DNA from: Blastocladiella emersonii ATCC 22665
Taxonomy: Eukaryota; Fungi; Blastocladiomycota
DNA length: 64,000 bases
Assembly: GCA_025594325.1 (NCBI GenBank)
Contig: JANHCV010000005.1
Location: forward strand, 1,984,001-2,048,000
Direction: 5' to 3'
How positions within the stretch are numbered: the stretch's first letter is position 1; every line of letters starts with the position of its first letter. The notes under the pieces are model-generated. The model was not told the origin of the DNA. It was given only the letters and a program-made list of their open reading frames with translations, and ran no database searches. The position numbers and the translations under genes were made by a program. Shown here piece by piece: positions 14,487-60,928 of the stretch.

Positions 14487-15525
14487 ATGACTGACACCAT
14501 GCATTGTTCGATCCGCGTCGCTCTCGCCGCGTTTATGGCCTTCGCCATCGCCTTCGCGGCGCTCCTCGGACTCGTCGAGTCGGCGCACCGCGATTCTGCC
14601 GCGCCTGTCACCAAGCTCATCACAATTCCGTGGCGCGACCTGCCCGACTCGCCGTGGAAGCGCGACATGGTTGCCGCTGGCCTCGCCGCGCCGCAGGTCG
14701 TGCACCCGGACGGCATCGCCGCCGACTCGATCCGGTGGTCCTTGGCATACCCGAACAGCCGCATGACCGAGGCCGACTACTATGGCACGCTCCTCGCCAT
14801 CTGCACCCTCGAGACCCACCGCGTTCATGCCGACTGCGCCAACGTCGAATCGTGGGACCTCTCGCTCGAGACTCTCCACCACTTTGCCTCGGACTACTCG
14901 CTGCTCCCGGCCATCTTTGACCTCGTCTCGCCATCGGGCCGCTCGCACGGCCTTCTCGGCGCTCGATCCGACTCTCGGACCCGCTCGGGCCCGACTGTCA
15001 CGATCCGCGTCAACCACGAGCCAGAAGGCTCGGCGTCCGTTACGACTACGACAGCCACTGACCATTACACTTCCGCGCCCGCCTTCCCGGCTGCGACGGA
15101 CCTCTCGACTGTGCCGTCATCCAGCTCGGCCGCTGCTCCCGCTCCACCCGGCTCTCGTCGAGCTACTCGCAGCATCACGTACCCGCTCATGTCGGTGGCC
15201 ATCACCGTGTTCATCTACTTTGCTTCCGCCCTCCATCGATCTCGGGTGGTGAGCTCGTCCGACGTGTTCATCCTCCACGTCATCGCCAACGCACACGCCA
15301 ACATGGTCCGCCGCGGCCTGCTTCCTGATGGTACGCCAGCTCTATCAACCCTTCCGCTGGATCGGACACTTGGAGCTGACCGCGTACTCGGCCTCGATAG
15401 TCCCGATCGTGTTCGCGCTGCCCAACGACACTGCGGCGCAGGAACTCGAGCACCACGCGCATGCTGCGGCCGCTGCCTCAACCTTGTGGGCGTCGACACC
15501 GGCTGGCTTTGCCCCGGCGTGTTGA
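14487..15525 (+). CDS. Orphan secreted or single-pass membrane protein (island gene A)
   Basis: Hydrophobic N-terminus and a second TM (YPLMSVAITVFIYF); predicted intron 15331-15400 (GTACGC...GCTGAC...TAG) gives a stop at 15523-15525. Confidence 0.55.
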
Positions 15526-15557
15526 CGTACCTCAACACAATGTTGATCGGGCTTACG

Positions 15558-16390
15558 CATCGTCACCCAGCATCATCGCCACGGGGTACGCGACTGGCCC
15601 GCTTCACATCGATCGATGGGCACTGACCATTCATTCTGGACGCGCTCCCGTAGCTCATCCTCGCGCTGGCTTCTCGACTCGCACTTCACGCTCATCAACG
15701 CCAAAAGGTACCACGCAAGCAATTTGACCGCGCGCGACAACCTCGGTCCATCATCACGGTCCACTACATCCTCCTCAAGCGCACTACTACGCGGTCACAA
15801 CCATGTCGTAGCGTCTGCTCCCAGTCGCTCCTCATCTGGTACGCTCCGAGTTGGCCGGAAACCGCTCCCCGATCATCGCAGCTCACACTCATATCCCGCT
15901 AGCAACGACGCGTACCGGCCACCCATCGACATCACCATCGTGCGGCGTGCTTTCACAAGTCCTCCGACAAGACGCGCTTACCATCGCCCAACGGTCTCGA
16001 GTTACTTCGAACTCGACAGCGACACCACGCACGGCTCCCCGTCGACGTACATCGCCCGGCCGTGTGGGACAAATGTTCGCACACGGTCTATTAGGGGTGC
16101 GGTGCCGGGTGCGTTCAGGTCTGATGCCAGTCGCACGCGAGCGAGACCTGCTGGTGGATGTGGGCATAGAACTCATCGTTCGACGGTCCTCATGAGTTTA
16201 GCTAAATTTTTACAGATCGTTTGGTTGTGACTATGACCCGCGAGGCTGTATCAGGACCGCTTGAGAAAGTGGCGGGGGAGAGTTGCTCGCAGCGTGTTTG
16301 AGGCGCACGTGTGTGGCGCGGCGCGTCCCGCTAGCCCTTCGCGCCCACGTCGCACACTCGCGTCGCAATTCAAGCGGCGAGAGAGGACTA
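15558..16390 (+). repeat. Copy 1 of a diverged non-coding block containing two intron-like segments
   Basis: Aligns by eye with 20087-21455 (e.g. ctggtacgctccgagtt, gcagctcacactca, catcgcccggccgtg, tacagatcgtt.ggttgtgactatg). Confidence 0.85.
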
Positions 16391-18058: not shown

Positions 18059-20071
18059 ATGGTTCGCGTCGCCGACCTCAAGCGCCGGCTCGCCGTCGCG
18101 GCGCTGCTCGCGTTCGCCATGGCCGCCTCGGTCGTGTGCCTCTTCATCGCGCCCGCCGGCAGCTCGGCCTCGACTGCCGCGCACCTCCCCGTCCCGTCCT
18201 CGGTCTACTCGGCGTCCGCCATCTCCGACTACACCTACTACCCGACCGCTGCCGCCGCGGTCCCGTCGGGCCGGCCCCTCGCCAACCAGGTCGTCGTCAC
18301 GGCGCTCGCCATGGTCCTCGAGCTCAGCCAGGCCCACGCGTTCGGTACGTCTGCTCCTCCTCTCGCTTATCGCGCCGCGCGCGATCGGGTGCGCGGACAC
18401 GGTCGCGTCGCGGCGTCACGCGTCGGGAGACGAAATCGTGACGCGCGGTGCGCACACGTGCCGCTCGATCGGACGCGTCGCGCCACTTTCGCCTCGCCTC
18501 ACTCCCTCACTTTTCCCCGACGACCATGAAGCTCACGCAACTCACCGCAACAATGGATCGAACGAACAGAGTTTGTCCCGACCTCGGTCCTCGCCGCGGC
18601 CGCTGTACTCGCCCCGCTCGCCTTCATCGCGACGGCCCCGCTGCACTCGTCCGCCGACCTGCTCGCCTATGCGCCTCGGCCGGTCCCGCACTCTGGCTTC
18701 CTCCCCATCCTGACGCTCCCGCCTACGCGTCCGCTGCCGCCTCGTGCAACGACGCGTCCGCCCGTGCGGCCCGCGCCACTTGCGGTCGAGTGCGTCCCGA
18801 CGTGGGCTGCCAATGCCACCGTGGCCATGTTCCCGCCCACCTTTGTCCCGACCTGTGGCCCGCACGCCATCACCTTCGTCACCTGCCGGTGCTCGACGCC
18901 TCGCTCGCTCGCCCGCCCCGTCGCCGTCGTACCCGCGGCCGCCGTCGCCACCCGGCCTCGCGCCTCGGCCCCGGCCGTGCCTGCGATCCCGCTCGACCTC
19001 ACGCAGTTTACCCGCCACCATGACCTCTCGTCGATGCCCATGCCCACCATGTCGGTCGCTCCCAGTGCCGCCGTGCCCGTCCAGTCCTCGGCGGCGGGCT
19101 CGGCCGAGCGTCTCAATCTCGTGTTCGACCTGTCCGGCTACCGCTTCGTCGTCGCCGCGTCCACGGGCGTTTTCGGCTCCGCCACGGACCTCACCATCGC
19201 CGAGACCCCGAGCCCGAGCCCGATTCCGGACGGCCAGGCCAAGCCCGACAACGACAGCATCTTCTCGAGTCAGCTGGCGGGCCCTCACGTCCAAGCTACG
19301 CTTCTCGTCGCCGGTTTCATCTCGGTCGCCGACCGCGTCACCACCGACCCTCTGGGCGTCGCCGCGCTCGTCGCCGCGCTCGTCTCGGCGCTCATCCGCG
19401 CGGTCACCGCCGTGGTCCACCGTCTCGACGACTTTCTGTGCTCGCGCTTCCTCGTCCTCGTCGAGTCGCTGGGCTTCAAGCACGCGCCCGAGCCGCACAA
19501 GTGCGCGACATACTCGCGCCACGGCTCGATCACCATGGTGGCCGGTGGTCCAGGCTACGCCATGAGCTCCGCCGGCGACGCGTCCTTCCTCGCCCCGCTC
19601 ACGCACGGTGCCGTCGTCGTGCGCTTCTCGCAGGTGGTCCTGCTGCAGTCCATTGGCAAGCACATGCTCCGGCCCGCCACCGACCTCGACCAGCGCGTCG
19701 CGGCCGCCCGCACCATTCGCCAGGGCGGCTTCAAGGCGCACTCGGACCGCCTGCGCGATGCGCTCGGGCTCAAGGCGGCGCGCTTCGCACCCAAGCCGGT
19801 GCGGGTCGCCTTCAAGCCCCTCGTTCCTGCCACCGACCCCAACAGGTGCTTCACGGACCGCCGCGCATGGAGCATCACGCAGCTCCAGCTCAAGTCGGTC
19901 GACGTATGCCGCTCGATTGCCGTCCGCAGCGCGTTCCTCCCCACCACCGCCCGCTACGAAGAATGGGAGGAGCTCAAACGCCGCCGTGACGTCAAGCACA
20001 AGCTCGCGAGCATTCTCTGCAACAAGAAGTTGAAGAAGCCCCGGTGGCTGCGCCGGGTCGCCCGCTTCTAG
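18059..20071 (+). CDS. Orphan membrane-anchored protein (island gene B), ~595 aa
   Basis: ATG at 18059 with signal anchor; intron 18345-18569 (GTACGT...AACAG) joins AHAF-E-FVPTS in frame to the long ORF ending at 20071. Confidence 0.6.
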
Positions 20072-20659
20072 TCGAGCCGCCTCGGCCATCGTCACTCAGC
20101 ATCATCATCGTCACGAGGTATGCGACTGAGTCTACTCGTATCGATCGGCGGTCACTAACTCTCCTCGCTGTGCTCGTTTTGATAGTTAATCCTCGCGCGC
20201 GCTACTCGACTCCCTCTTCACGTCCATCAACAACCTGCCGGTGCTGTTCGGCATCGGGTCACCATCACGGCCACTGGCACTCTCGAGTCGATCTTCCGCT
20301 GCATCCTCAACACGCGCGACCTCGAGCCGATGACCACGGCCATGTCGATGCTGTTCATCACCCGGCCGCGCCTCAACTGGTACGCTCCGAGTTCACTCGC
20401 GACCGCTTCCTGATGTTCGCAGCTCACACTCACCCCCGCTAGCTACCACGCGCATCTGCCGTCGGCGTCATCATCGCGCAGCGTGTCTCGACCAGTTCTA
20501 CAACAAGACACGCTCGCGGGCACCCGTCAAGCTCGAGTCGGCTCGACCTCAACAGCGACACCACGGCTGTCCGTCGTCGTGCATCGCCCGGCCGTGCGGG
20601 TCAGATGGTTTGGGACCTAGACGCGTCGAGCCACGTCCCCCGCTCGTGCGCTGCGGGGG

Positions 20660-20776
20660 CAAGGGATGGCGTACCTGAAGTGGCACCATTATTACGTGGT
20701 GTAGCGAGGGGAGGGGTTGGGGAGAACCTCCCGCCCAGAGTGAGGCCTGCCCCGCCGCCTCGCTCGCCATCCCTTG
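20660..20776. other. Structured hairpin element, copy 1 (candidate ncRNA or MITE-like element)
   Basis: Terminal inverted repeat CAAGGGATGGCG/CGCCATCCCTTG; inner stems GCGAGG/CCTCGC and GGAGGGG/CCCCGCC; 33-nt core identical to copy 2. Confidence 0.7.
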
Positions 20777-21022
20777 TCATCGTGGAGGACCGTGCTAGGC
20801 GCCTGTGCCATCACCATTGACCCGCTACGCCGAGCGCATATGTACGTCGACCGAGTCGTGGAGGCCGAGGATGGACGCGCGTGAGCGGGCTCGTGTTTGG
20901 GCGAGCTCGGGTCGCGCATTATCACCGTCGTCGTCCTCGGCCGCGCACACCGTCCCGACGCCGCGGTTCCAGCAGATGGGGCGGTACTCTAACGCAGGAC
21001 CATGTCCCCGGAGCGCACGGGA

Positions 21023-21109
21023 CAAGGGATGGCGAGCAGAGGGGAGTGGTTGGGGAGAACCTCCCGCCCAGAGTGAGGCCTGCCACGCCGCCTCTCTCGC
21101 CGTCCCTTG
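21023..21109. other. Structured hairpin element, copy 2
   Basis: CAAGGGATGGCGAG/CTCGCCGTCCCTTG, AGAGG/CCTCT and GGAGTGG/CCACGCC stems around the same 33-nt core. Confidence 0.7.
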
Positions 21110-21842
21110 CAGTTTCTGCGTGGTCTTGTACGGGGTATCGTTCTGTCACGGCTGATCCGCGGTGTAGGGCGTGTGCACGTCACACCGAGATCGGTCGCAC
21201 GCGAGCGAGGCACGCGCTAACGAGCGCGGTACCGTCGTCGTTCGGCGGCCCTCATGAGTTTCTCGATGAATGTACAGATCGTTCGGTTGTGACTATGCTC
21301 CGCGAGGCTACGCTAGGCCGCCCGGGTTCGCTTGAGTAGGTGGCGATGAGGAGAAGATCGCGACGCGTTTGAGGAGCACGAGTGTGGCGCAGCGCGTCCC
21401 GCTGACCTCCGAGCTGGCGTCGCATTCCAACGTCTAGATCCGCAGCAAGAGGACGAAGGACCAAAACTGCATTCTAAACTGGGATTCGAGAGAACGTAAA
21501 GTGGGTTTGTCCGATAGATGCACTGCGGCAAGCCCGGCTGAGGCAGAGTTGGAGGTGCGCATCTGTGGCGTCGGCTACCGGCACCCGCTTTGCTCACGCT
21601 CGCTCCCTCCTGTCGCCCTGTGCTGAGATGAACCTGCTGATGATGGGATGACATTCACTTCATGCAAACCGCCCGCCGTGATTGCTCCACCTCGAAGCCA
21701 ACGTTGCCTTCCCGTTCCTTGCACTTTTTGGGTTCCTCTTGAGCACCGCGGGCTCTCTTGTCGCGCGCGGACTAGTGCGCCCCCCGTTTTGTTATCTATC
21801 GAACGTGAACCATCGCTGTTGCCGCCAGCTGGCCATGAAACC

Positions 21843-22343
21843 ATGGACGACTTCGACCCAGAGCAGGGAGACGACATGCCTTCCAACTTTGCCGAGCGCT
21901 GGGCCGACATCATGATCTCGGACATGGACGTTGAGGAGCTTGCAAATTCACTTTGCGCTCGAGTTCCGCGTTGCTCGCTACAAGTGCTGAGCACAGCCTG
22001 CGCCATTGCCGCCTTCATCACGTTCACGCTCCGGACACTCGAAGACTTGCAGGCGACACTGGACAAAATTGGCGAGCAGCTCGAGCGGAAGCGGTTGTTC
22101 TTTGGTGCTCTGGATTCTTGCGAGCTCGACCTTGTGCGCGTTCGAGAACTCGACGTCTACGCGCAGTTCAGTATCCTCTCACTGGAGTTCGACACCATTC
22201 GCAACGCGGAAGCGGGCTTGGAACTGATGAAGGTCTCGCAGCAGTTGCGTGAGCTCGCCTGCAAGATCGCCCAGCTGACTTTGACGGCTGAGAACCTCTA
22301 CGGCATAACTCTACATTTGAAGATGATGGTCGACCTGATGTGA
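21843..22343 (+). CDS. Orphan helical protein, 166 aa
   Basis: ATG in a CCATGG context; uninterrupted amphipathic-helix ORF; lower GC than core genes; no recognisable family. Confidence 0.45.
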   Translation: MDDFDPEQGDDMPSNFAERWADIMISDMDVEELANSLCARVPRCSLQVLSTACAIAAFITFTLRTLEDLQATLDKIGEQLERKRLFFGALDSCELDLVRVRELDVYAQFSILSLEFDTIRNAEAGLELMKVSQQLRELACKIAQLTLTAENLYGITLHLKMMVDLM

Positions 22344-22652
22344 ATACAGATCCCTTCCGAGACCCTGACGCCTGTCGCGAGCGGATCAAACTTGGTGAAG
22401 CTGGACGTCATCCGAGTCAGCATAACCAGTGTGTGCCAACCACAGAATCTTGAGGTACTCGAGGTACTCGTGCGTCACCGTTGCAATCCAGAGGTGGGGT
22501 CATGGCAGGCGTCGCGTCAAGCACTTGTCTTGAGCGGTTGCCGGGACTTCCATGCACGCAGAAAGAATCAACATTAGAGCGGCGCACGCGGCACGCCAGA
22601 CACGCAGGACAGATGACAATGAACAGACAGATACAGGGCAAATCGGCCGGGT

Positions 22653-24070
22653 TTAGACCATGGAGACGAAGCCGCGGTCCTCCTCCTTCTTGGCGAGCAG
22701 GAACATGGAGTAGGCGGGGTCCTCGGTGACCTCGCGGTCGAACTCGACAAAGGGCGGCAGGAGGCTGCGCAGCTTCATGGACTCCTGGAGCTCGACGACC
22801 ATCTGGTTGGCGGCGTCGCCGGCCTGGGCGGCGAGCATGGTGCTGGACTGCGAGTCGACGCGCACGCGGTGCTCGGGGATGTAGGCCTCCATGAGGACGA
22901 GCCCCGGGTTGGGCGACTGGAACACGTCGAGCTGGTAGTAGCAGTTCTGGTAAAGAAAACAGCGGCGCGTCTTGACGACCGGGTGGCGCGTCGGGTCCGT
23001 CTGCGTCTTGAGCGCGTCGTACTCGCGGCCGTTGATGGACCGGCGCTCCTCGACGCGCTGGCCGTCGGCCAGGGTGCGGCGCGTGGTCAGGTTGTAGTGG
23101 CACGTGCCCGACTCGTCGAACCGCTTGCGCATGCGCACCTGCGACCCGTCGGGCGTCGGGTTGAGGTACCGGTGCTCGACCGTGAAGTCGCGGTACACGA
23201 CGGGGAACGGCGCCGCGAGGTCAAAGTTCTTGACCAGCATCTAGAGAGATTGGGAGCCAGAGGTTAGCGAGGTATCGAGTGACCGACGGTCGTGACAGAG
23301 CCGTGCCTTGTGCTTGCGGATACCCTTGCCCCAGCGCTTGTCGACGTGGCCCATGCGGTTGAGAACGGCCTCGATGACGCGGTGGCACTTCTTGTCGAAT
23401 CCAGTCGAGTTGTCGACGAGGAAGAAGTGCGGATGGCCGATCCAGGCGGCCTTGACGAGCTGGTCGAGCTTGCGGGCGAGCTCGGTGCCCTCGGAGCGTG
23501 TGGCATTGTTCTCGTTGCCGTAGAAGGCCTCAGCGCCGTCGGCGGCCGTGACGAGATGCACAACCATGTCGTAGCGCGAGTCGCGGATGTCGACCTCGCG
23601 GAGCTGCAGCTTGTCGAGGATCTTCATCCACGACGGCCGGTCAATGTACGCCGACGGGTCCATGGTGCCGCGGTCGCACAGAACAACGGTCTTGCGGCCG
23701 TGGTTCTTGAAGTTGGACTTGGCGAGGTCGATGTAGGTCTGCTCGATGGTCATCATGGTCCGCAGCAAGTTCTCTTGGAAGTTGAACTGCTGCTCCTCGT
23801 CGAGCTCCGAAAAGAGCACTCCACAGCCAAGGAGGATGGTGGCCGTCTCCGGAATACGGTAGACCTTGTAACCGAGGTGGTTTTCGAGCACGTCCGAGAG
23901 CATGGCCTGGACAGTCGACTATGGGTGCGGCCACACTAGCGTCAGATCGGATCGGCGGGCGGAACGGGTGTGTAGACGGTGGTGCCGACCTTGCCACCAC
24001 TGGGGCCGCCGGTCAGGGCGACGACGAAGACGCCGTTCTCCTCGACGACCTGGGGGCTGAGAGTGGCCAT
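22653..24070 (-). CDS. TTD14: AAA_28 P-loop plus CYTH-like protein (TTD14-like)
   Basis: VALTGGPSGGK|ST with Walker A split by an intron; PETATILL, VLCDRGTMD; CYTH-like C-terminus (VRMRKR, KTRRCFLY..YYQLDVF). Confidence 0.85.
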
Positions 24071-42944: not shown

Positions 42945-43259
42945 TTGCCGTGGGCGCTGGTCCTGGGCGGGCTGGTCCCACCCCTAGGGGAGGTGGAGCG
43001 CGAGGGCAGCGGCTACTACCCGTTCCGGTTCCTGTGGTCGCTGTCGGCGCCGCGGCACGCCGTCGAGGCGCTGTTCATCGAGGAGGTGGGGGCGCGCGCG
43101 TGGGACGAGCTGACGCAGGGGACCGCCGTGTACGACGCGCTCGGGTACCGCAAGGACGGGTACGGCGCGGCGGTGCTCAACATCGTGGTGATTGGGCTGC
43201 TGTGGCAGACGGCGGCGCTGGTCGGGCTCAAGCTGGCGAATCGCGAGCGTCAAAAGTGA
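42945..43259 (+). pseudogene. Isolated 3' fragment of an ABCG transporter (last TM segments)
   Basis: WALVLGGLVP...FLWSLSAPRHAVEALF...GY...AVLNIVVIGLLWQTAALVGLKLANRERQK resembles an ABCG C-terminus; only ~0.3 kb separates it from ACY1, leaving no room for an NBD. Confidence 0.65.
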
Positions 43260-43275
43260 ATGCATCCGAAAAAAA

Positions 43276-44348
43276 TTACAAAATGTCCTTGAGGTTGACC
43301 TGCGCCGACCCGCGCGCCAGCGGCTTGGGCTGCGTCGGCGACGGCTTCCACCCGATCAGGTAGATGACCTGGAACGTGGCGGGCACCGAGTTGCCGTCGG
43401 GGTTGCCGTGCATGGCCTGGTAGATGGCCGCCGCCGCCGCGAGCGTGTCCCGTTTCAGGGCGGGCCGCCGCTGCGCCACGGCGTTCGACTCGCCCATGGC
43501 GCGCAGGTCGTCGACCAGCTCGTACGCCGACGGGTAGTCGACGACAACCTCGTCCACGTCGACGGTCGTCAGCGTGAACCCGGCGCGCGACAGCAGGCCG
43601 CCCATGTCGGCCGAGACGGCCATGGGGCTGACGCGCGGCGACACACCGCCCTCGCGCTCGAGCTCGGCCAGCTGCAGGCTCGTGCGCAGCTCGAACACCG
43701 AGTCGCCGCCGAGCATGGCGCCGATGAAGACGCCGTCGGGCTTGAGGCACCGGTGCGCCTGGATCAGCACGCCCGGCAGGTCGTTGACCCAGTGCATGGA
43801 CAAGTTCGACACGACCATGTCGAGGCTGTCGGGCGCAAACGCGCCGCCGAGCTGCGTCTCCTCGTCGAGCACGCGCCGCTCGATCTCGACGTCGCGCTCC
43901 CCGTCCAGATCGGCGTCGCGGTACAGCAGGTCGCGCGACATGTCGCACATGACGACCTTGGACGTGATGTCGGCGTCGAGGTGCTTCACGACGTGCCCCG
44001 CGCCGGACCCGACGTCGACGATGACCGGGTACCGGTTCTTGACGTCCTGTTGTATCTCGCGGGTGTTAGTCTCTGTGAGTGCAAGTCGCTTCCCGAGAAA
44101 CACGGACGGACCAGGATGCGGTCGACCAGCCGGGCGGCAATCTCGTCCTTGAGGTAGTCGGCGGCGCGGGCGCTCGGGTGCCGGCTCGCGCGGTCGCGCT
44201 GCAGCCGCTTGGCGGCGCGGTCAAACACCTGCGGCGCGCCCGCCGTCGGGGCCGCAGCGACGCCCGCCCCCGTGGTCGCCAGCGCGCGCGATGCCGTGAG
44301 CCGTGACGGTGGTGCGAGTGCGGCAAGTGCGCGGCAGCCGTGATACAT
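43276..44348 (-). CDS. NDUFAF5: Mitochondrial complex I assembly methyltransferase-like protein
   Basis: VFDRAAKRLQRDRA, DVGSGAG, SNLSMHWVNDLPG, ELRTSLQLAELEREGGVSPRVSP, ATFQVIYLIGWKP. Confidence 0.96.
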
Positions 44349-44904
44349 GGTTTACGAGGTATGTTGGTCTCGGAGTGACATCGTCGCAATATGCAGTGGT
44401 TGAGCACCGCGTTCGCGCAAATCACGTTGGGCTCAGCCGTGTGGCGCGGCGCGTCATCTGCTGGAACCTCATAGTCGGCATCAAGTTGCCTGATACGAGC
44501 TGATACGGACTGGAGATCTAGGACCGACTTCCATGCGCAGGGACGCTGAGGCGCGGACCTGGGCAGAAGGCGGACTGAACCCACCCTGGCCGTGCTATCG
44601 TGTTGGCTGAGAGCGAATCAACGGCTCTTCCACCTACCGACCGTGTCGTACACTGAGCACTCGGCCGTCTCCGCCCGAAGCATAGGGCGCCAGACAAAGA
44701 CTTCGAGAGACAGTGTCCCCCGCGGCATGTGATGCGGCGTGCCGGCGCGGGAGACATCGGAGAGACGCGTTCTTAGAAGATTCCCATCGGCCGGACGCGT
44801 CGCCGCGCGGACGGCGACGATTCCGTCTCCTCACCTCGGCTCCGTCCTCGACTCCGTGTGGCCGCGACGACGGGCCCCTTGCGCCACTTGCAGCGACTCT
44901 CTAT

Positions 44905-46970
44905 ATGCATCAACACGCGCCTGACGCCTCCGCGGCGCCCGCCCCGCCGCCCGCGGCGCCCGCCCCGCCGCCCGCGGCGCCCGCCCCGCCGCCCGCGGCG
45001 CCCGCCCCGCCGCCCGCGGCGCCCGCCCCGCCGCCCGCGGCGCCCGCCCCGCCGCCCGCGGCGCCCACGCCGCCGACGGTCGACGCCGCGGCCAGCGCCG
45101 CGCTGATGGCGTTCATCCAGAACAACGCCATGGAGCCCGCCACGGTCGGCGGCTGGGTCGCCATGGGCGCGGCGTGCGAGTGGCACGCCGAGGAGACGCG
45201 CGACCAGGTCGCCCGGATCGCCCAGAGCATCGCGGCCGAGATCCCGCACGGCCGCCACAAGCCGCTCGTCGAGGCGTCGATCCGCGTGTCGGCCATGGCG
45301 ACCCAGCTCGACCACGCGCACCAGATCGTCACGAGCCGCATCGCCGCGCTCACGTCGACGCCCGTGCCCGAAGCAACCGGTCCGCCGATGCCAGCTCCTG
45401 CTCAAGTTCCCGCAGGCCGTGGACCACCATCGGCCGCGGCGCCGGCGGCCGTATCCTCGGCGACTACCTCGGCGCCCGCACCGGCTCGGCCGGCCTCGAT
45501 CTCGGCGCCCGCGTCGGCATCAAGCGCGCCGCCGTCGTCTGCCGCCTCATCTTCTACCACACCCGGCGCACCCGTCCTCGCCGCTGCTGCCCCCGCCCCG
45601 CTCGGTTCCGCGCAGGCACGGGACCCGCGGCGCCCACGGCACCAGTTCATGCCGGCTGTTCCCGTCTTCAACGCGCTCGGGTTCGCGTCCGTGACCGCGG
45701 CCGCGCCGTCCCCATCATCTTCGAGCTCGTCGCCGGCGGCGGCAAGTATCCCGCCCAGCAGCGCCTCGGCCGCCGCTTCCGCCGCCAGCAGCAGCAGTCG
45801 CACGCCTACGAGCCGCAGGCCTACGAGCAGTCCGCGAGCGCCGCTCCCGCATCTACGACATCGTCGGCGTACGCGACGTCGTCGTCGACTGGTTCTTCCA
45901 CGTCGGTCCATCCGCGTCACGATGACCACCACCACCACCACCACCACCACCACACGGCGGCCCATCACCACGACCACCATCACCACGGGCCTACGACGGC
46001 CGCCGCCGGCCGCGGGTGCAAGCTGTGCAAGATGATTATCCGGTCCGGGTCTGGGTCAAAGCGCGTGCGCCTGGACGCGCACGGCACGTCGCAGTGTCCG
46101 CTGGTGCGGTCCGAGCAGGAGATCGTCCGGTTTGCCAAGACGTTCGAGCCCGGGCTGCGCCGCGTCAAGGGCATCCAGAACATCAAGCCGGGAACCGGGC
46201 CCGACGTCACCGAGGCGATTCTCGCGCGGCGCGCTCAGCGGCTCGCGGACCAGATCGAGAAGCTCTGCGACCGGAGCCCCGAGTACCGGCCCATCCAGCT
46301 CGCGCTCCGCATGCTCGCCCAACTGCCGACGGCCGACGGTCGCGCGCACCTGCTCGGCTTCTTCTTCGACACGCTCCGCGAGCTGCAGCAGGCGGCGATG
46401 CGCAAGGCCTCGGGCATCGCATCGCACGACAACTCCGTCGCCGTCCAGGCCAACTCTGCCGCACCGGCGGGTCCGCCGGCGGCCGCCGCGGCCACGGCCT
46501 CGTCGAGAGCCTCGTCGTCCGCATCCGTCGCAGCGCCTCATGATTTCGCGCTCGCTTCCGTACCCGCTCCTCCTGCGGCCAACCGCCCCTTCTTCTCCAT
46601 GTGCGGCTACTGCCGCGCCGTCCTCCGCGGCGAGCCAGGCCGCATCATGGGCCAAGAGCACTCGCACCGTGTCGACGAGTGCAAGCTGCTGTCGTACGAC
46701 CTCGCCAACCGCGTCAAGCGCTGCCTGCATCATCTCGCCGCGGCAGGCCTCCCGTTCGAGTTCGGCTTCACGTCGCACGCCTCGACTGTGGGCGAGACCG
46801 CGCTCGTCCGGTGCGCCGAGCAGCTGATCGCCCAGCTCATCCAGCTCGACAAGTCGTACCCCAAGGCGCGGGTCGTGCGTTCCGGTCTCGGCGAGATCCT
46901 GCGGTTCGGCAAGACCAGTCGCCGCACGGACGCCCTCATCCTCCTCTTCACGCTGGTGCTCGAGGACTAA
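44905..46970 (+). CDS. Orphan protein with Pro/Ala repeat, His tract and two CxxC..H..C plus helical modules; reading frame breaks near 45690-45800
   Basis: ORF 44905-46035 overlaps ORF 45174-46970 in another frame; modules CKLC...H...QCP and CGYC...H...ECK; the break could be a weak intron, an assembly error or pseudogenisation. Confidence 0.5.
44932..45078 (+). repeat. 21-bp minisatellite, six perfect units plus one degenerate, encoding (AAPAPPP)n
   Basis: Unit GCGGCGCCCGCCCCGCCGCCC read directly at 44932-45057. Confidence 0.95.
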
Positions 46971-47616
46971 GTGCGCCGAAGCGCGTGGGCCGGCGGCCGA
47001 CTGGGATGCCGCATCGGCGACATCGTTGACTCTTCCTAATACCATTAGCACATTAATCACCACTCACTCCCTCTTCCCAAGAACCTCGCTTGCATATAAT
47101 TGGTTCTTTCGCATTGTTCGCTTGGCCTCCCTGGGTTGTGGAGCGCGCGTCGCGTGGGCCGCTGGATCAAGTGACGGCGAATCTTCGCCAAAGTACTACA
47201 CATTGACCAGATCCGGCCGTCGTGCTCTCACCGAGGGACAAAAGGGAGTGAAGCATGGACAGTATTTCTCGGTGACCTTAGCTCATGGCGAAGCCTTGAA
47301 ATCCGGAGCGAGGGGCACTTTGCCAAAGTCAAGCTCTCGTACTCGGCGGGCGGGAGTCGAGTGGACACGTTGCATCGGGGCTGTTGGCGTGGATATCGGG
47401 GGACCGTTTCGAACCCTAAAAAAGTTCGGCAATGATAGTCCATCATTGAGGTACCTGACCGGCTACGTCCATAGACTGGTGCAACAAAAAAATGCCCTCC
47501 TCCCCCCACTTACTAACCACTAACCATAAACCTTTTGCTCGATGGCATTTCTGGTCTTTCCTTCTTGAATTGTTGCTATTTTCACGCGCGCGCGTGCGGT
47601 GCCTCGGGAGACAGGC

Positions 47617-47682
47617 GGTGGAGACGCGTCGCGAAAACGCGTGATCCGATCACGCGCCGTGTGCGAGACGCGTCGCGCCACA
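47617..47682. promoter_or_regulatory. 66-bp ACGCG-rich palindromic element, copy 1
   Basis: GAGACGCGTCGCG twice flanking CGCGTGATC-N-GATCACGCG; 65/66 identical to 48963-49028. Confidence 0.6.
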
Positions 47683-47741
47683 CTTTTGATCAACTCACCT
47701 GAATTTCAGATGCTGTTCACGTTTGAAAAGGTGTAAAAAAC

Positions 47742-48287
47742 TTGTCGGGCATTCATAGAGGATATTTATTGACTCGCGACACAATTTTTAAATACTTGAC
47801 TCGAGACCTTCCGCCTGCAAGGTCTGGATTAATGAGCCGACGGCCGTGCATTCGCGTTGTTAGCCAGACGGGAGGTCAGCGAGCGCAATTACACATGCTT
47901 TCTAAGGCGGCTACGTCGGCATGCTCAAGAACTGAGTCGTCGATCACGCTCGTAGTGCGCCAGCCCGAGAACGTAGCCTGGAGTCGTGCGAAGCGACGCA
48001 GCGTCTTCGCCGCCCTTCGCCTCGAGGACTTACAGCTATGTCCGTGTCAGCTCGCCGCTTCGAATCCGCCGGTCGACTTTGACAACGAGATCATGCAGTG
48101 TACGACGGGTGCAAGCGCGGTCGTGGTCTGCAGATTCACTCGGAAGCTGTTGCGCGAGATCGGCAAGCTCGACCAGTCGTACCCGATGCCGCAGGTGGCG
48201 TGTGCCGGTCTCGATGTAGTCTTCCGGATACACAAGGACCAGGACTGCGTGGAAGTTCGCCTGCTCAAGCTGTTCGCCAAGCTCTAG
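47742..48287 (+). pseudogene. Diverged paralogous fragment of the C-terminal module of 44905-46970
   Basis: LLREIGKLDQSYPMPQVACAGLDVVFRIHK versus LIAQLIQLDKSYPKARVVRSGLGEILRFGK; stop codon in the equivalent position. Confidence 0.6.
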
Positions 48288-48962
48288 CGGCGGCGTCACC
48301 GTTACGCGCGGTAGTCGGCGCGGCGCGACTGCCGAGGCGTACGACTCGTGCCGCGGTTGCCAGTTGTGCTCGTTGTTAGCATAACTCTCTACCATCATTC
48401 AGCATGAACGTTCCCACATACACTCAATCTTAGCGCACTAGTTCTTGCCATTCGTCCCGCTGACGTGAACAATCGTCTTGACTGCCCTACGCTGATGCTG
48501 TGATGGGTAGACTGGCCGCATGTCGATAGAGCGAAGAGGGACGACGTTTCTGTTGTGTTGGGTTTTACAGAGTCGGTCACTGCTCGCCTCGGCCGGGGTT
48601 GACGATTCGCTGGTGGGAGCTGGGCGCGAAGGGTACATTGCCCTGGTTGGACTGCTACGTTTGACGGGTAGGAGTGGAGTCGTCAGACCGCAGCTTCTCG
48701 GTTCATGGCCGTGCGTGTGTCCAGGCCCCCGTTCGAGTCCCTTGCTTTCAAGCAAGGGCTTTGACATTGCTTCCATCATCATCAATGCGTGTGTGGTCTC
48801 TCCGCGCACGGACCATCAACCTGAAGACTCAATTTGGCCTCCCTCCTCCCTGTTGAGCTAACTACACTAACCTTTTATCATCAGAAACTCGGATTTGTTA
48901 TCCCCTTTTCGGTGTGATATTCTCGGTTTCGCGGGCGAACGAGGCCACCGCGGGAGACGATT

Positions 48963-49028
48963 GGTGGAGACGCGTCGCGAAAACGCGTGATCTGATCACG
49001 CGCCGTGTGCGAGACGCGTCGCGCCACA
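48963..49028. promoter_or_regulatory. 66-bp ACGCG-rich palindromic element, copy 2
   Basis: Differs from copy 1 only at the central base of the palindrome (C/T). Confidence 0.6.
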
Positions 49029-49330
49029 GTTCAATCAACTCGCCTGAATGCGGATGCCGCACGCGCTCAAAACGTTTCAGTGCCGTATGTATCAACCAGG
49101 TAGTGTATATACTGACTTGCGAGCCCATGGCTAAGCCCGGACTTGAGGTTTTCCCGGCCACAGAGTGCGTGGTTCAAGTGAACCCTCGCCAAAGCCCTCC
49201 TGTTGTCCAATTCGGCCTCGTTGACGCATTCAAGGACCGTGCTGGTGATCACCGTCGGGGGTAAGCCGGCCCGCGGTCATATAAAGAGGTGCGTGCGATG
49301 GTTCATGTATTGCCGTCAACGTGGCGACGA

Positions 49331-51720
49331 CTAAAGTCTGCGCAGGAGCGAGAGCACCTCGTCCATGTCGTGCTATACGGAGCGTCGCAAGTCAGTCCCG
49401 AACGCAATTTCATCGCACGCCCCCGCGTCCGTACCTGGAGAATGTGTAGCGAGTACAGCGACGCGACAACGAGCTCGCGCAGCCCGTCGCCCGTCATGTC
49501 CGCGTGGTACATCGCGTGGACCGGGTACGCCATCTTCTTGACGGACACGAGCTGGTATTGGTTGCTAATTGAGTCTACAGTGATCGGTTGGACAACGTCA
49601 GGTCTCTTTGCAAAGCCAGAGGGCAGAACCGTACCAAAGTCGTACATGAGCACGCGCTGGCCGTATGTTCCGAGCAAGAGCTGGTCGCGCTTGCCGTCCG
49701 TCCACCGCAAGCGTGCCACACACGCACATAGTACCGAGTCGAACTGGTCGCTGAGCAGCAGCGTGTGCGGCTCGACGGCGTCCCACCCGGATCCGTCGGC
49801 GCAAATGCCGCGGAAGACGAGAGCAGGCTCGGACGCGGCAACGATCAGCAGGTTGAGCTGCTCCCGAGTGTCCTCCTGCTCGGTGCCGCCCGGTTTGGTG
49901 ACAAGGAACTCGATGGCGGTGATGGGCGTGTAGAAGAGCGGGTACTGGAATGTCCGTTGCCGCGAGCGATCTACTTGGCGGCCAGAGTCAATAACTCGAG
50001 GGACGAGGTCCGGTGCCGAGATTCGGCCGTACCAAACGTGTGCGTAACGGAGTCGCGGTGGTCGACCACGACCTGCAGCTCGCCCGAGCCGTAGCCCAGC
50101 GCCAGGTACCGCGCGTCACGGTGCTCAAACGTCGTGAGGTGCGTCAGCCTATTTTCGTTCGACAAAGTCAGCATGCGCTGAACATGTTCGCTCAAGGGTT
50201 GAGAACGTACGCCGATTGCTGAGGCACGAGGTCGGGGAAATGCGCCGCCGTCTCGACGGCCTGGAACTTGCGCGTTGACGGCACCTCGGCGTACAGGTGC
50301 AGCTCGCCGGCCGTGTCCGTGACGCAGATTGCCATGGGCTCGCGGCCCTCGTGGTGGATCCTAACTCGGATCGAGTGTGAGCACCGAGGACGTATGAGGC
50401 GCCACACGAGAAGTCAACCGTACTCAATGTGTCCGACTTGCAGCGGCTCGTAGTCAAGCGGGATGATCTGGCAGTCACCGGCGAGGGCAAACAGTTTGCG
50501 CTCGAGGGTCGGCGCGTTGCTCGAGGCGCCGTAGATGTGAAGCGCATGTCGCGAGTTGCTGCTCTCATCGGGACCATCGGGACTCGCGCGGTTCTACAAA
50601 AAGTCAGAACACAGGAATCGGCGGTTCAAGCTACGCCAGAGCGTACCGTGATAACCGTGACAGCGACAATCACATTGGACACGCCCGTCCGAGACGGACC
50701 GCGCGCCGGCCTGACCTTGCCGGCGACCACGTCAGCAAAGTTGAACATGGAGTGGCGCTCAAACGCGTGCATCGCAAGCGCCGCTGCAGACTCGGTCTCG
50801 GCCAGCTGGCCAAGCGGGACCTCGACCGTGTTCCAGTACCCGCTGGCCGCCACGATACCAAGCAGGTGGTTGTTGGAGCTGACCGAGAGGACGTGCAGGC
50901 GCTCCTCGCCGCTCGGCCCAGTTCCCGAGTCAGTCGCAGTCGAGGAAGTGCGCGAGACGGACGGTTTGCCGCGAGTCGACGCGGATCGAGCGGGTACGTC
51001 CTGGGCAGCTGCATCCACAGCGCGAGCAGACTCGCGGGAAGCACCTGGTGCGGAAGCTGGACGCCGCTGTTGATCCGCCGCCGCGCCACCCGTAGCGACA
51101 TCTTCAGGTGCGAGGGTCACGGCCGCATCAGCGACGGGTGCAGCAGTCGCCTGCCACACAACGGTCGGGACACCTGTCGATGGTGCGGTGGCGGGGATCG
51201 GCGCCATGCTCGGAGTCGCTGTAGGCAGAAGGCTGCTAGTGGTAGAAGCTGTACCGCCCGCACCGAAAGCAGCTCCCGCGCTGGGCTCTTCGACAAGCGG
51301 GAGTGTGACGGCGACTGGCCGCGCTGCGAGCGACGCGCCGCTGCTCGCCGAGGATGGCGGCCCACCCGCAGCACCAGCAGCGGCGGCGGCGGCGGCTTCA
51401 CGGGCAGCGTCGAACGGCACGACGGGCGAGACGTGGCACGAAATGGGCTGAAAAGATGGCGAGACAGCGGCGAGCGCCGCCGCGTCGGGCCCGCTCCCGC
51501 TCCCCACGCCCGACGTGTAGACGAAGGCCGGGTGCATGGGGGTGGCGGGCAGCACGGCGGGCGCGGCCGTGCGCAGGCCCGACGAGCCAAAGACGGTGGT
51601 CCGCGCGAAGCCGCCAAACCGCGCGACGTGGATCTCGTGCATCGGGAACGGGACCAGCCGCGGGAGGGCCGAGGCTGGCGGCGCATGGTCGCTGCCCGGG
51701 ACATGTTCATTCGCTTCCAT
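49331..51720 (-). CDS. KPTN: Kaptin-like beta-propeller (KICSTOR subunit)
   Basis: SDQFDSVLCAC...LLLGTYGQRVLMY and HADMTGDGLRELVVASLYSLHILQ match the KPTN C-terminal motifs as recalled (SDQFDSVLC, ATYGQELL, DLTGDGLQELAVVS); multi-exon. Confidence 0.8.
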
Positions 51721-51937
51721 TGTGACTCTATTGCATGGACTCGCGGTGCATTCGGGGTCGGCGCGATCTCGGCCTGCAGGGCGTCGGGTCGGCTGCGGTC
51801 TCACAACGACATGATCGCCACGTCGTCGGCGCGCGCGCTCGGGCGACGCCGAGGCCAAGACATGATGTAGTCAGTGTATATCTAAAGTATATGGTTGGTC
51901 GGTTTCACACGGAGAAGCCGAGCGGGACGGGAAGCGC

Positions 51938-54900
51938 CTAGCCGTGCTTGCGCGACGACGACGACCGGCGGGCCTCGCCCGAGTGGTGCTTGAGCGGCGA
52001 CCGGCCCGCGGCGCTGCCGACGTTGCTGCCGCCCACGGCCGACGTCAGCTCGGTGAGGATCGCGTCCGTCTTGAGCTTGAGCTGCGACACGGCCTCGCTG
52101 AGGTTGTCGGCGGCAGGCTCGCCCGCGACCCCCGAGTCCGACTTTTGCTGCCTCTTGCCGTGCTGGCCAGCCGCCGGCGAGCCATATGCGGCAGCGGCCG
52201 CAGCGGCTGCCTCGCGGAGCTTGCGCTCGTGGCGGCGGTGGTGGTGCTCGCGCTCGCGGGCACGGTCGTGGGCGCGCGACCGGCCAGCGAGCCCGTCGGC
52301 GGACGACGTCGACGACGACGAGTGCTTGGCGGCGGCAGCCGTACTCGACGTCTTGGCCTGCTGCTCCTTCCACAGCTTCTTGCGCAGCTTGGCGATGGCG
52401 ACCTGCTCGGACGCCCACAGCTCGAGGTGCGACGCCCGCGCCCCGCGCGCCTCGTTGGCCGCAATCGCGCGCGCCAGCTCGTCCTGCACAATGACCGGGT
52501 ACCCCGCCCGCGCGGGCCCGTCGCCATCATCCCGCGAATCCGAGTCGCTGGCGGTGGCGCTCCGACTCGACAGCGAGCCATCATCCTCATCGTCGGTGCA
52601 CGACCCACAGGACGCGGGGACGGGTCGGGGGCGGGACCGAGCGGCGGGGACGGGCGACGACGGCTGAGCGTTGCGTGGGGCGCGGCGGCTGCTCTGCGGA
52701 GGCGCCTGCTGCTGCCGTTGCTGTTGCTCGTGCGACACGGCCGTACGCACCACGTTGAACGTGTCCTGCGACCGCGGCGCCGCCACCTTGCTTGGCGATG
52801 AGGCGGGAGGACTAGTCGGGGACGTAGCGCGGGGGATGTTGCCACCCGCACGCGCCGCCTTGGCGGCCTCGCGCAGACGGTCCGCGTTCGAGCGGCGGGC
52901 GAGGCGGCGCTGGAGGTCGACGAGGCGGGCCTGCCGCTGCGGGTCTAGGACCGGGATCCCCGCCGCCGCCCCAGACCCGTCACCATTACCGCGACCGCCG
53001 CCGGCAGCTGCGCGCTCGGACTGCGGGGGCGCCGACGGGGCCACGGCAAACGGCAGCGACGCGCACTCGGCGGCGAGCGACTCGACCTGGTCGCTCGTGT
53101 CGAGCGCGACGGGGAGCGTCCCCTCGACCAGCGTCCGCAGCTCGCTCAGCGTGCGCAGGCCCGCCGCGAGCCCGTTGAGGGATGCCGCCGCTTCCTCGGA
53201 TGCGCTGAGTCCCGCCGCAGACTGCTGCGACTCGGCCGCCACGCGATTGGCAACGCGCAGGGCATCGAGCGCGGCCGATCGGACGGAGGCCCACGTCGCG
53301 GCGAGGTCCTTGGTCTCCTGCTGCACGGTCGCCACGCCGGCCACACCCATGTCAGCCGACAGGTTGCCGATGTGGGCCAAGAACTCAGCGACGCCGGTGC
53401 GCGCGCGGTGAGTGTCCTCGATCGTGTCCGAGATGGCCTGGCTGGCCGAGCGGAGGACGCCGCGGCCGCGCGCAATCGCGTCGCCGAGCCGCTGGATGCG
53501 GTCGCCCGACCACTCGTGGACGCACAGGCCGGCCGTGGCCTGCAGCTGCGCCTGCGCCCGGGCGAGCGCCGACGCCGACCGCTGGATCTCGGTGGTAAGC
53601 GGGGCGAGGCGCGAGCGCATGGACCCGACGGCGGCGAACGCGCTGGGCGAGCGCGCAAACTGCGTCACGTCGATGCGGTCGAGCGTGGCGTGAATCTGCG
53701 CCGCGAGGTTGCGGCTCGACTGCACCGCGTCGGCGAGCGCCTGCACGAGCTGCCCCGCGGGCAGGATCGTCTCCTCGGCCGCAATCGACTCGAGCGTGTG
53801 CGCGAGGGCGAGGAGCGCCGTCTCGTCGGTCCACGCACCACCCCCCGCCGTCGTCGTGGGATTCGAGCCCGGGTTATTCGGGTCCGAGCCGGTGCCGCCA
53901 TCGGGGCCGACTGGGCGGACGGGCGCCCGCAGGTGGGCCAGCGCGTCGTCGAGCTCGCCCATGACGCTGGCGCCCTCGGCCTGCGCGCACGACAGCTCGG
54001 TCAGCGACCGCACCGCGCGGCGCCACTGCGACCGGACGGCCTCGTCGAGCGAGAAGGCCGCGTGTGCGAGCAATAGGTTCGGGACCGTACCCGTAGTACC
54101 GTTACCCGACACGGCCTCGAGCGCAAAGGGCGTACACGACACGCACGAGTGGGTGAGGCGGCGCAGCGGTGCGAGGTGCCGCGGGTCGACGACGCCGACC
54201 TGGTACTTTTGCGTGTTCTCGACCTCGGCAATGTGCAGCGCGCCCGAGATCTGCGCCGAGTAGTAGTCGAGCAGCTGCGCGCACATGCCGCCCGCGTCCT
54301 GGCCCTCCTTGCTGGCGCGCTCGGCGAGGGTCTTGGCGATGATGAGGCGCGCGATGCGCTCGCCGAGCGCCACGTCCGGGCCCAGCGTCGCTGGCGCGTG
54401 GAAGTGTGCGAGCGCCGTGTACAGCAACGCCTTGCCCTGGAGCGCGGCCATCCAGCCGGCGGGGAAGCGGCCGTTCTGGGCGGACGACGACGATGACGAC
54501 GAGGTGAGCGGCGCAAGGGCCCGGTGGATGGCCGCCGAGATGGCGCGACCGCCACCCGCCACCCCGCCGCCATGGTGGCCCGAGCCGCCGTGGTCCGAGA
54601 AGGCCGAAAATGACGCGCCGGAGGAGTACGACGACGACGACGAGGACGACGACTTGGACGCGCGCAGGGCGAGCTCGTAGTGGTCGGCGGTCTGCGCGGC
54701 AATCTGCGAGGTGAGCGTGCTCGAGGCCGCGTCGAGGTTGGCCTTTTCGACAAAGCACTCGTGCGCCTGGGCGAGCATGGTCTCGCTGAGGGCGTGCAGC
54801 GTCTGCTGGCTGAGGTCGGCCGCCTTGCCGAGCTTGAGGCGGAACCGCGGCGCGAGCACGTCGCGGACGTAGGCAAAGACGCCGGCGGCACGCTGAAAGT

Positions 54901-55960
54901 GGCCCGCGGCGACCTTGATGCCGTCGGGCGTCCAGATGGGCTGGTTGGCGGCGAGCTGCGAGTAGAGCGCGCCGAGGTTGAAGAGGACCGCCGCCTTTTC
55001 GACCTGGATGCACCGCGCGGTGACGGCTACAAGTTCGCATGGTGTGAGCGGCTAGCCGGGCGGGTCGTGGGCAAGATGCTGGATGGACGGCATACCCTTC
55101 TTGTGCGGCGCAAAGGCGTCGAACCAGGTGAATGCGACGTCGACCTCGTCCGTGGCGAACGGGAAGCGCTCCTCCATCCACAGCAGCAGCGCGTAGTACT
55201 CTTGGAGCCGGGCGAGGCCGCCGTCGGACCGCTCGGGCGCGCCGGCGTGGATGCGCAGCTGGTTCATGGCGTACCAGTGCGAGTCGAGCGGGAGCGCGCC
55301 AGGCCAGAAACCCGCCGCGGCGTGCGACAGCCCGGTCGCGTAGTTGTCCGAGGCAGTGGTAGCGCCCGGAGCCGACGACGGCGACGAGGAGGCCTCGCCG
55401 AGAATCTTGGGCAGGAGGGCATCGCGCAAGTTGAGAAAGTGCTGCTGCTGTTGCTGCTGAGGCGCGGGAGATGACGGCGGCGAACGGTTGACGGTTGCCG
55501 CGATGGCGTTCGGGTCCGAGGCGACAACACCGCCCGCCGGGCCCGCAAACACGCTCTGCGCGTCGACGGCCGAGCTCGTGCCCGCCGCACTCGCGGGTGG
55601 CCAGGCCGCTGGGTGGTGCGGTGGAGGAGGGCTCACGACAGCGGCAGCGACCGACGACACGGCACCCGCGACGCCCTTGCCGAGGCCGAGCAGCTTGTTG
55701 ACGGGGAGCGCGGCGAGCGACCGGCGGGCGGCAGCCGAGGTGGTCGGGACGAGCGGCTCAAAGTTGCGCTTGGCGGGGACGACGAGGAACGACGAGGTCG
55801 CTGCCCCGCCCGCGGCAGAAGCTCCACCACCACCACGGCGGTGCGGGCTGCTGCGCGATCCGTCGCTGCCGAGGAGCCCCGCGGCCGATCCGGCGTCCCG
55901 GTTGAGCGCCGTCTGCGTGAACGTCTGCCAAAAGTTGCTCACGTCCGCCGACGTCGTCAT
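51938..55960 (-). CDS. BRO1-domain protein (ALIX/Bro1/PalA family)
   Basis: LQEYYALL, FTWFDAF, EKAAVLFNLGALYSQLA, AAGHFQRAAGVF, MLAQAHECF; intron at ~55028-55077; helical middle and low-complexity tail. Confidence 0.9.
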
Positions 55961-56239
55961 GGTCGGTCGGTCGTTTTGCGGTGTAGGCGGATCCGGCGTA
56001 TGTCGCTCGACTCGATGCGTAGAGATAGATGGATGGATGCGTCTAGCGTTTCTTGGGAGGAGGAGTGCAAGATCAGAGCGTATCTTGAGAGGGGGAGAGA
56101 GAAACGCGTCGGCGCGTGCTCACGTGCGCCTGAGGCACGCGTTTCGCCTCGCCTCCCCTTGAGCCTCCCCTTCCCGCATCGCCCCCGGTGCACCACCAAG
56201 CCAGTCCAAAAATGAATGAATGTATACCCCAGCCAGCAT

Positions 56240-57907: not shown

Positions 57908-58278
57908 GGGGTTATTGAGTGTTCAAGAATGATGAGGGAAAGATCAAACGAAGCGAGCAAAGACGACATCGAAATCGAATCGCAACGGACTCGACAGCTT
58001 CGTCACGCGACCACGCGGAAGGTGAAACGAGACGCGTCGGCGGTCGCGCTTTTGTTTTCGCGCGATCGCGTCGCGGCGGGAGATGTCCGGTCGTGATACG
58101 CCGGAATATCACCAGTGTCCCCCGCCCGCCCTGTCCCAAAATGACATGATGAAACAGCCCGATGGGGGGCAATGCTGCCTTGCCCGCCTGCCCCCGCTGG
58201 CTCTTGATGAAGCAAGCGACCCCTCTCCCTCACCTCACCTTACCTCACCCTTGACCCGGTCAAGTACCAGCCACCGAA

Positions 58279-60750: not shown

Positions 60751-60928
60751 CCTCCCGTGCTCTAGGCTGTGGTTTGCAGCTGATTTTTTTGGGAGTGAAT
60801 TTCTCTGAACGCGCTTGAGGCGCAGGATTGGAATGTAAAATATGATAGGTCGCGGCGCGCTTCCCGCCGCTTGTAAATTCGGACGAGAATCTGTATAGCA
60901 TCATGGAATGTACAAACCGCCTGAACAA

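Follow-up and report, generated by a model that had tools for sequence, protein, structure and literature searches.

Are two nearly identical branched hairpins, lying a few hundred nucleotides apart in the fungus Blastocladiella emersonii ATCC 22665, the traces of a small mobile element, a structured RNA held in shape by selection, or a DNA palindrome that was caught up in a local rearrangement and has no function? The published assembly of this strain comprises 21 contigs (PMC9730499). The genome measures 32.65 Mb at ~66% GC, and the locus lies on contig C17, within the 64,000-nt stretch of DNA analysed here, which I call the window and to whose first letter all coordinates refer unless a contig is given. 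An initial annotation, made by eye from the sequence, had pointed to two copies of an exact 33-nt core, each carried on a long stem, and had offered either selection on structure or a miniature inverted-repeat transposable element (MITE) as the explanation. The parts of the two hairpin modules are as follows.

20660-20776, + strand: hp1, copy 1 of a Y-shaped hairpin module, 117 nt (MFE -65.6 kcal/mol, z -5.43; 75.9 bits to covariance model R1)
20672-20702, + strand: insert specific to hp1, 31 nt, from the alignment of the copies and the fold
20717-20749, + strand: apical core of copy 1, 33 nt, two mini-hairpins, exact match
21023-21109, + strand: hp2, copy 2 of the module, 87 nt (MFE -54.7 kcal/mol, z -5.35; 109.9 bits to R1)
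21050-21082, + strand: apical core of copy 2, 33 nt, exact match

Both modules start with CAAGGGATGGCG and are 94% identical across the 71 nt that they share. The 33-nt core was found exactly where it had been described, with two exact + strand occurrences vs 0 expected by chance, although the spacing needed correction, since it is 333 nt from core to core and not ~360 nt. The two small hairpins on a long stem also held up: each copy folds as a bulged stem of ~27 bp leading into a three-way junction that bears GGGAG-AAC-CUCCC and a second small hairpin, and none of 200 shuffles was equally stable as RNA for either copy (z about -5.4). An A·G mismatch and a bulged G are common to both stems. 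The insert of hp1 does form a small hairpin of its own, as had been proposed, but is 31 nt long rather than 32, and it occupies the site of a bulged C in hp2. The modules end in perfect 12-nt terminal inverted repeats, CAAGGGAYGGCG and CGCCRTCCCTTG, with boundaries that are sharp at the ends of the palindrome; any palindrome trivially has such repeats.

Does the twin belong to a family? The initial annotation had called for a genome-wide search for more copies, and in the 32.6-Mb genome BLAST with hp2, a scan for the terminal-repeat pattern and a search for the core with up to 3 mismatches each returned nothing beyond the twin and one duplicate of it. The covariance model R1, built from hp1 and hp2, likewise hit four places only, the twin and the duplicate pair, and its next matches (E 0.39 and 3.3) were GA/TC low complexity. 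The duplicate pair (C17:1932916-1933365, opposite strand, 100% identical) is not independent evidence, because it lies within a 100% inverted copy of window positions 1-21399 at C17:1932626-1954024, a recent duplication of 21 kb whose outer edge, at 21399, falls 290 nt past hp2. The assembly contains two further duplications of this kind: window 42946-60751 is a 99.96% direct copy of C17:1955188-1972992, and window 42946-48214 a 99.4% inverted copy of C17:1977548-1982837. A search of 19000-23000 against Rfam at E up to 10 gave no match to SRP or any other family, only generic miRNA-hairpin noise (E ~1-4); the top matches, mir-483 and mir-328, reach 22 bits against gathering scores of 60-70 (E ~1-2), in line with the earlier impression that hammerhead, HDV-like, SECIS, tRNA and snRNA consensus sequences do not fit. 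The twin is one pair of long RNA-type hairpins at one locus and not a mobile element.

The neighbourhood of this pair is itself unusual, consisting of two related stretches of DNA of which one carries the hairpins and the other does not.

15559-16354, + strand: block A, the paralogous tail without hairpin, with the empty site at 16076-16084
20091-21424, + strand: block B, the non-coding tail with the hairpin region, ~73% identical to block A, with introns at 20119-20185 and 20381-20443

The open reading frame at 18764-20071 is 100% identical to H9P43_005303, a hypothetical protein of B. emersonii ATCC 22665, which is placed on the + strand by GC3 phase and whose annotated protein ends in RRVARF before a TAG at 20069-20071; block B starts 20 nt past this stop codon. 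Block A starts 33 nt past the annotated stop (15524-15526) of an unrelated gene, H9P43_005302. Both genes are orphans, for which the protein databases hold no homologues, and for the neighbouring TTD14-like gene the best database hits, chytrid and blastoclad proteins that include Coelomomyces, are 54-65% identical. A module of ~800 nt with two introns thus follows the stop codons of two unrelated orphan genes at a gap of 20-33 nt, and in the genome block B has no relative other than block A.

Both introns are canonical, lie on the + strand and are conserved in the two blocks: intron 1 (15586-15653 in A, 20119-20185 in B) reads GTAYGC ... CACTRAC ... TAG, and intron 2 (15840-15903 in A, 20381-20443 in B) reads GTACGC ... 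CTCAC ... TAG. A third intron around the hairpins was considered and rejected on account of weak splice sites (GTTCGC / GTTTGG). The exon at 20186-20380 has a coding-like GC3, and a start codon was not found for it. The later portions of the two blocks differ by 4-nt indels and are therefore probably non-coding, and the blocks could be an intron-bearing 3'UTR or a separate spliced non-coding unit. The next gene, at ~21648-22343, is again on the + strand, which makes + the sense strand of the block introns and of both neighbouring genes.

The 9 nt at 16076-16084 of block A are replaced in block B by ~514 extra nt (20608-21121), so that the element is indeed absent from the paralogous block, as first reported, and the empty-site search proposed at the time now has its site. 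The corresponding part of block A, 16015-16175, has no excess structure (z -1.3, and z +0.4 in a second fold test). That the twin site is within an intron-bearing non-coding block just past a stop codon is new beyond the first reading of the locus; so is the finding that the hairpins are the apices of fold-backs of ~255-315 nt, which extend over ~20555-20868 (unit 1) and ~20935-21190 (unit 2) and are built from the following parts.

20561-20643, + strand: L1, left outer arm of unit 1 (X1+u1), an inverted repeat with 20782-20861, its 5' part homologous to block A 16030-16075
20782-20861, + strand: R1, right outer arm of unit 1, an inverted copy of X1+u1 by inverted-repeat score and ancestral states
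20862-20935, + strand: junction between the units, with CCGTCGTCGT at 20925-20934, from repeat search and global fold
20936-21004, + strand: L2, left outer arm of unit 2, an inverted repeat with 21119-21189
21119-21189, + strand: R2, right outer arm of unit 2 (d2+Y2), partly homologous to block A 16085-16145

When L1 is compared with the reverse complement of R1, the alignment scores 39 vs 16.8±2.4 for shuffled sequence (0/500 shuffles), and the arms show 63 Watson-Crick pairs, 4 G·U pairs on the + strand, 2 on the - strand and 5 transversions. For L2 and the reverse complement of R2, under symmetric transition-tolerant scoring, the values are 52 vs 22.3±4.3 (0/500 shuffles), with 46 Watson-Crick pairs, 12 G·U on +, 5 G·U on - and 2 transversions. 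Folded on the + strand, unit 1 reaches z -6.0 and unit 2 z -7.7. The fold of 20560-21250 as a whole gives z -10, a value explained by the far longer hairpins on which the two modules sit as caps.

How did such an arrangement come about? The reverse complement of R1 retains the block-A-like GTCGACGTACAT where L1 now reads GTCGTCGTGCAT, and since it shares the state of block A, R1 is a genuine inverted copy of the upstream segment X. In both units, unique sequence adjacent to a palindrome recurs inverted on the other side of it, and because each hairpin caps a longer fold-back, the twin looks like the product of palindrome-mediated template switching with the layout X-u-hp1-u'-X' ... Y'-d'-hp2-d-Y. 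An ancestral X-u-hp-d-Y inside the intron-bearing non-coding tail of H9P43_005303 would have been turned into this layout when replication switched template at the palindrome, and the rearrangement would then be a miniature of the larger inverted duplications around the locus. I infer its history, whether in one event or several, together with its timing. The A·G mismatch and the bulged G are kept in both modules, which argues that neither right arm was copied from its own left arm and, in turn, that the palindrome is older than the rearrangement.

A simple tandem duplication of a ~330-nt unit was the other model that I considered for the flanks: those upstream are weakly alike (anchored p 0.008, local p 0.046), those downstream are not (p 0.2-0.5), and the model was dropped because the inverted-repeat relations explain the flanks better. 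The inverted-repeat model in its turn explains only partly the residual likeness of L1 and L2 and the three repeats of CCGTCGTCGT at the borders of the hairpin units. Of this decamer the + strand of the window has 7 copies vs 0.64 expected, and the - strand none; they lie at the unit borders (20571, 20925 and 21232) and elsewhere at 8523, 11938, 19611 and 53848. The junction at 20862-20935 forms a hairpin of its own in the global fold.

The next question is whether anything has held the modules in shape since. The differences between hp1 and hp2 include one clean double change from G-C to U-A, a single wobble in which U-A has become U-G, and a right-arm G-to-T for which the left arm compensates with an A insertion and a shift of register; all 5 keep pairing and no pair is broken, which bears out what had first been seen by eye. 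In simulations of 5 random substitutions, all 37 pairs stayed intact in 0.9% of trials, and the share of trials without a break fell to 0.23% when one or more double-sided changes were required and to 0.008% when two or more were, the covariation evidence being that of two independent copies with 5 differences. Counting structure pairs between hp1 and hp2 was uninformative, as the shuffle control (242/500) was without power. The 33-nt core, which had been called invariant, is not significantly better conserved than the stem in a comparison of two copies only: at the overall rate of difference, ~1.9 differences are expected in 33 nt, and the probability of zero is ~0.15.

A further comparison sets the modules against the arms made with them. 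Substitutions number 5/87 in the modules vs 30/139 in all arms (Fisher p 0.0012), a contrast that is stronger against the unit-2 arms alone (p 1e-4) than against the unit-1 arms alone (p 0.066). Pairing is also better on the sense strand, in that, with a tetraloop linking them, the hp2 flanks reach z -5.9 on the + strand vs -1.3 on the - strand, and the whole of unit 2 reaches -151.4 kcal/mol vs -124.4. Across all arms and the hairpin wobbles, G·U-type mismatches number 18 on + vs 7 on - (p 0.043), a modest strand bias (p 0.04-0.14) that could also come from transitions arising preferentially on one strand. Between the unit-2 arms there are 17 transitions and 2 transversions, and when the three classes of substitution in that unit (12 G·U on +, 5 on -, 2 transversions) are set against a neutral Ts/Tv of 2, p is 0.016; this excess of transitions could reflect tolerance of G·U at the RNA level or mutation with a strong bias towards transitions. 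Short-tract gene conversion could likewise produce some of what is seen, and the statistics are those of a single pair. Of the two branches of the initial annotation, selection on structure is thus the one that fares better: pairing that is kept, modules less diverged than arms and better sense-strand pairing support structural selection on the module without proving it. The reading that I favour, tentatively, is that the twin is a sense-strand structured hairpin RNA kept by selection.

The most serious competitor is a possibility to which I give real but lesser weight, namely that module and arms alike are functionless by-products of error-prone fold-back or template-switch replication, the modules being kept alike by short-tract gene conversion between neighbours and their arms kept complementary by hairpin-templated repair, with any RNA made from them having no role. 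Template switching at a palindrome yields this kind of architecture, the assembly shows the window embedded in a mosaic of inverted and direct duplications of 99.4-100% identity, and the site is non-coding, with the paralogous block A doing without the module. Folding is seen on either strand of the modules and under DNA as well as RNA parameters: as RNA, hp2 on the - strand reaches -49.4 kcal/mol (z -4.28), while with DNA parameters hp1 gives z -6.3 and hp2 z -4.6, and the minus strands fold well too. Unit 1 is strand-symmetric (flanks z -4.4 on + vs -3.6 on -, G·U 4 vs 2), and at the DNA level the module stem is no better paired than the outer arms of unit 1 (25/30 vs 63/82 Watson-Crick, p 0.6). 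However, correction of one arm by the other would have to fix two new changes and yet spare the older A·G mismatch and the bulged G in both copies, and gene conversion limited exactly to an 87-nt palindrome is ad hoc. Nor does a process at the DNA level predict that the flanks of hp2 should pair well on the + strand alone, or that the modules should have diverged less than the arms that arose with them. Were this explanation correct, the twin would be an ordinary by-product of a genome prone to inverted duplication.

Far less survives of the mini-element branch, according to which the twin represents two insertions of a small non-autonomous MITE or foldback transposon with terminal inverted repeats CAAGGGAYGGCG...CGCCRTCCCTTG. 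Sharp boundaries at the ends of the palindrome, perfect 12-nt repeats and the absence of the element from block A are what such insertions would leave behind, but the reading is largely refuted, and I regard it as very improbable, because BLAST, pattern scans with up to 3 mismatches and the covariance model found no further copies in the 32.6-Mb genome, and because there is no target-site duplication, an absence that had been noted from the start (hp1 is flanked by GGGGG/TCATC and hp2 by CGGGA/CAGTT). The core is, moreover, absent from viral, metagenome and prokaryote genome collections, and around each copy its own flank has been duplicated locally in inverted orientation, so that hp1 and hp2 are not independent insertions; transposition does not yield such an arrangement. 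Two other element types were set aside by eye, a TRIM/LTR element since the ends are CA...TG and not TG...CA, with no target-site duplication and no polypurine tract, and a Helitron since the CTRR end is missing. Barely credible, finally, is a relic of a hairpin-ended ssDNA replicon, whether parvovirus-ITR-like terminal hairpins around a deleted genome or a plasmid-type origin, for although a long stem tipped by two small hairpins is reminiscent of T-shaped ITRs and a short segment is bounded by the two copies, the 246-nt spacer (20777-21022) is non-coding and unique in the genome, the core has no match in viral contigs, no replication-protein gene was found nearby (only ThrE and AAA_28 domains), the two cores point the same way and the arms were copied from host sequence at the locus.

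To return to a sense-strand structured RNA, what might it do? The region would be transcribed on the + strand, the twin probably as hairpin RNA, and the module would have been retained as a structured element; since the rearrangement the arms would have decayed while the modules stayed 94% identical, and the conserved apex may be the part that a protein recognises, with the stem presenting it. One possible role is to act within the host transcript on its processing or stability, and a purely cis-acting role seems to me rather unlikely. Another is that of a precursor of Argonaute-bound small RNAs, similar to milRNAs or hpRNAs, a route that I consider doubtful too, if slightly less so. It is possible because the genome has four intact loci with a Piwi (Argonaute) domain, two of them identical (C17:1404132, C17:1586553, C11:2504843 and C20:476549). 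A six-frame search of the genome detected no canonical two-domain Dicer and one single-domain RNase III gene (C1:2959691-2960185). Units 1 and 2 do form, on the + strand, the long imperfect hairpins expected of miRNA-like or hpRNA precursors, and the flanks of unit 2 pair well only on that strand; a target with extended complementarity elsewhere in the genome was not found by BLAST or by a search with the spacer. Bolder, and on present grounds improbable, is the idea that the Y module might be the recognition apex of lineage-specific Blastocladiella long-hairpin RNA genes, which would serve as precursors of Argonaute-bound small RNAs whose making needs no canonical Dicer, and would expand through inverted duplications of their flanks primed by the palindrome. 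If the twin is a functional RNA, it would be an undescribed structured element in an early-diverging fungus, and at the same time a clean small-scale case in which a palindrome seeds a fold-back rearrangement and survives afterwards.

It remains to place the twin among known systems. Parvoviruses such as AAV end in a T-shaped ITR, a stem with two small apical hairpins, and the module has an overall shape in common both with this ITR and with the three-way junction of the SRP Alu domain; it differs from the former in having no viral or Rep context and from the latter in giving no Rfam match to SRP at E up to 10. Like MITEs and foldback elements, the twin is small, non-coding, bounded by terminal inverted repeats and strongly hairpin-forming, but it is a single locus with no target-site duplication, no family and no autonomous partner. 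Hairpin loci can also be born by inverted duplication, as are Drosophila hpRNAs, young plant MIR genes and fungal milRNA precursors. Long imperfect inverted repeats made from local sequence and standing in tandem are seen in those loci as they are here, as are Argonaute genes in the same genome, and a further likeness, given the transcription predicted for the twin, would be that both lie in non-coding stretches of a sense-strand transcription unit and that pairing on the transcribed strand tolerates G·U. The differences are that the best-conserved part of the twin is a branched three-way-junction apex and not a 21-23-nt duplex, and that no two-domain Dicer was found in this genome. Rearrangements mediated by palindromes or inverted repeats, finally, are known as fold-back inversions and as DUP-TRP/INV-DUP events arising by template switching. 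In complex rearrangements of the palindrome-mediated kind, as in the twin, neighbouring segments copied in direct and in inverted orientation meet at a palindrome that was already there, and CCGTCGTCGT at the unit borders of this locus is a second point of likeness; what sets the twin apart is its tiny scale of a few hundred nucleotides, and that here the palindrome at the switch point has been better conserved afterwards than the arms that were duplicated around it.
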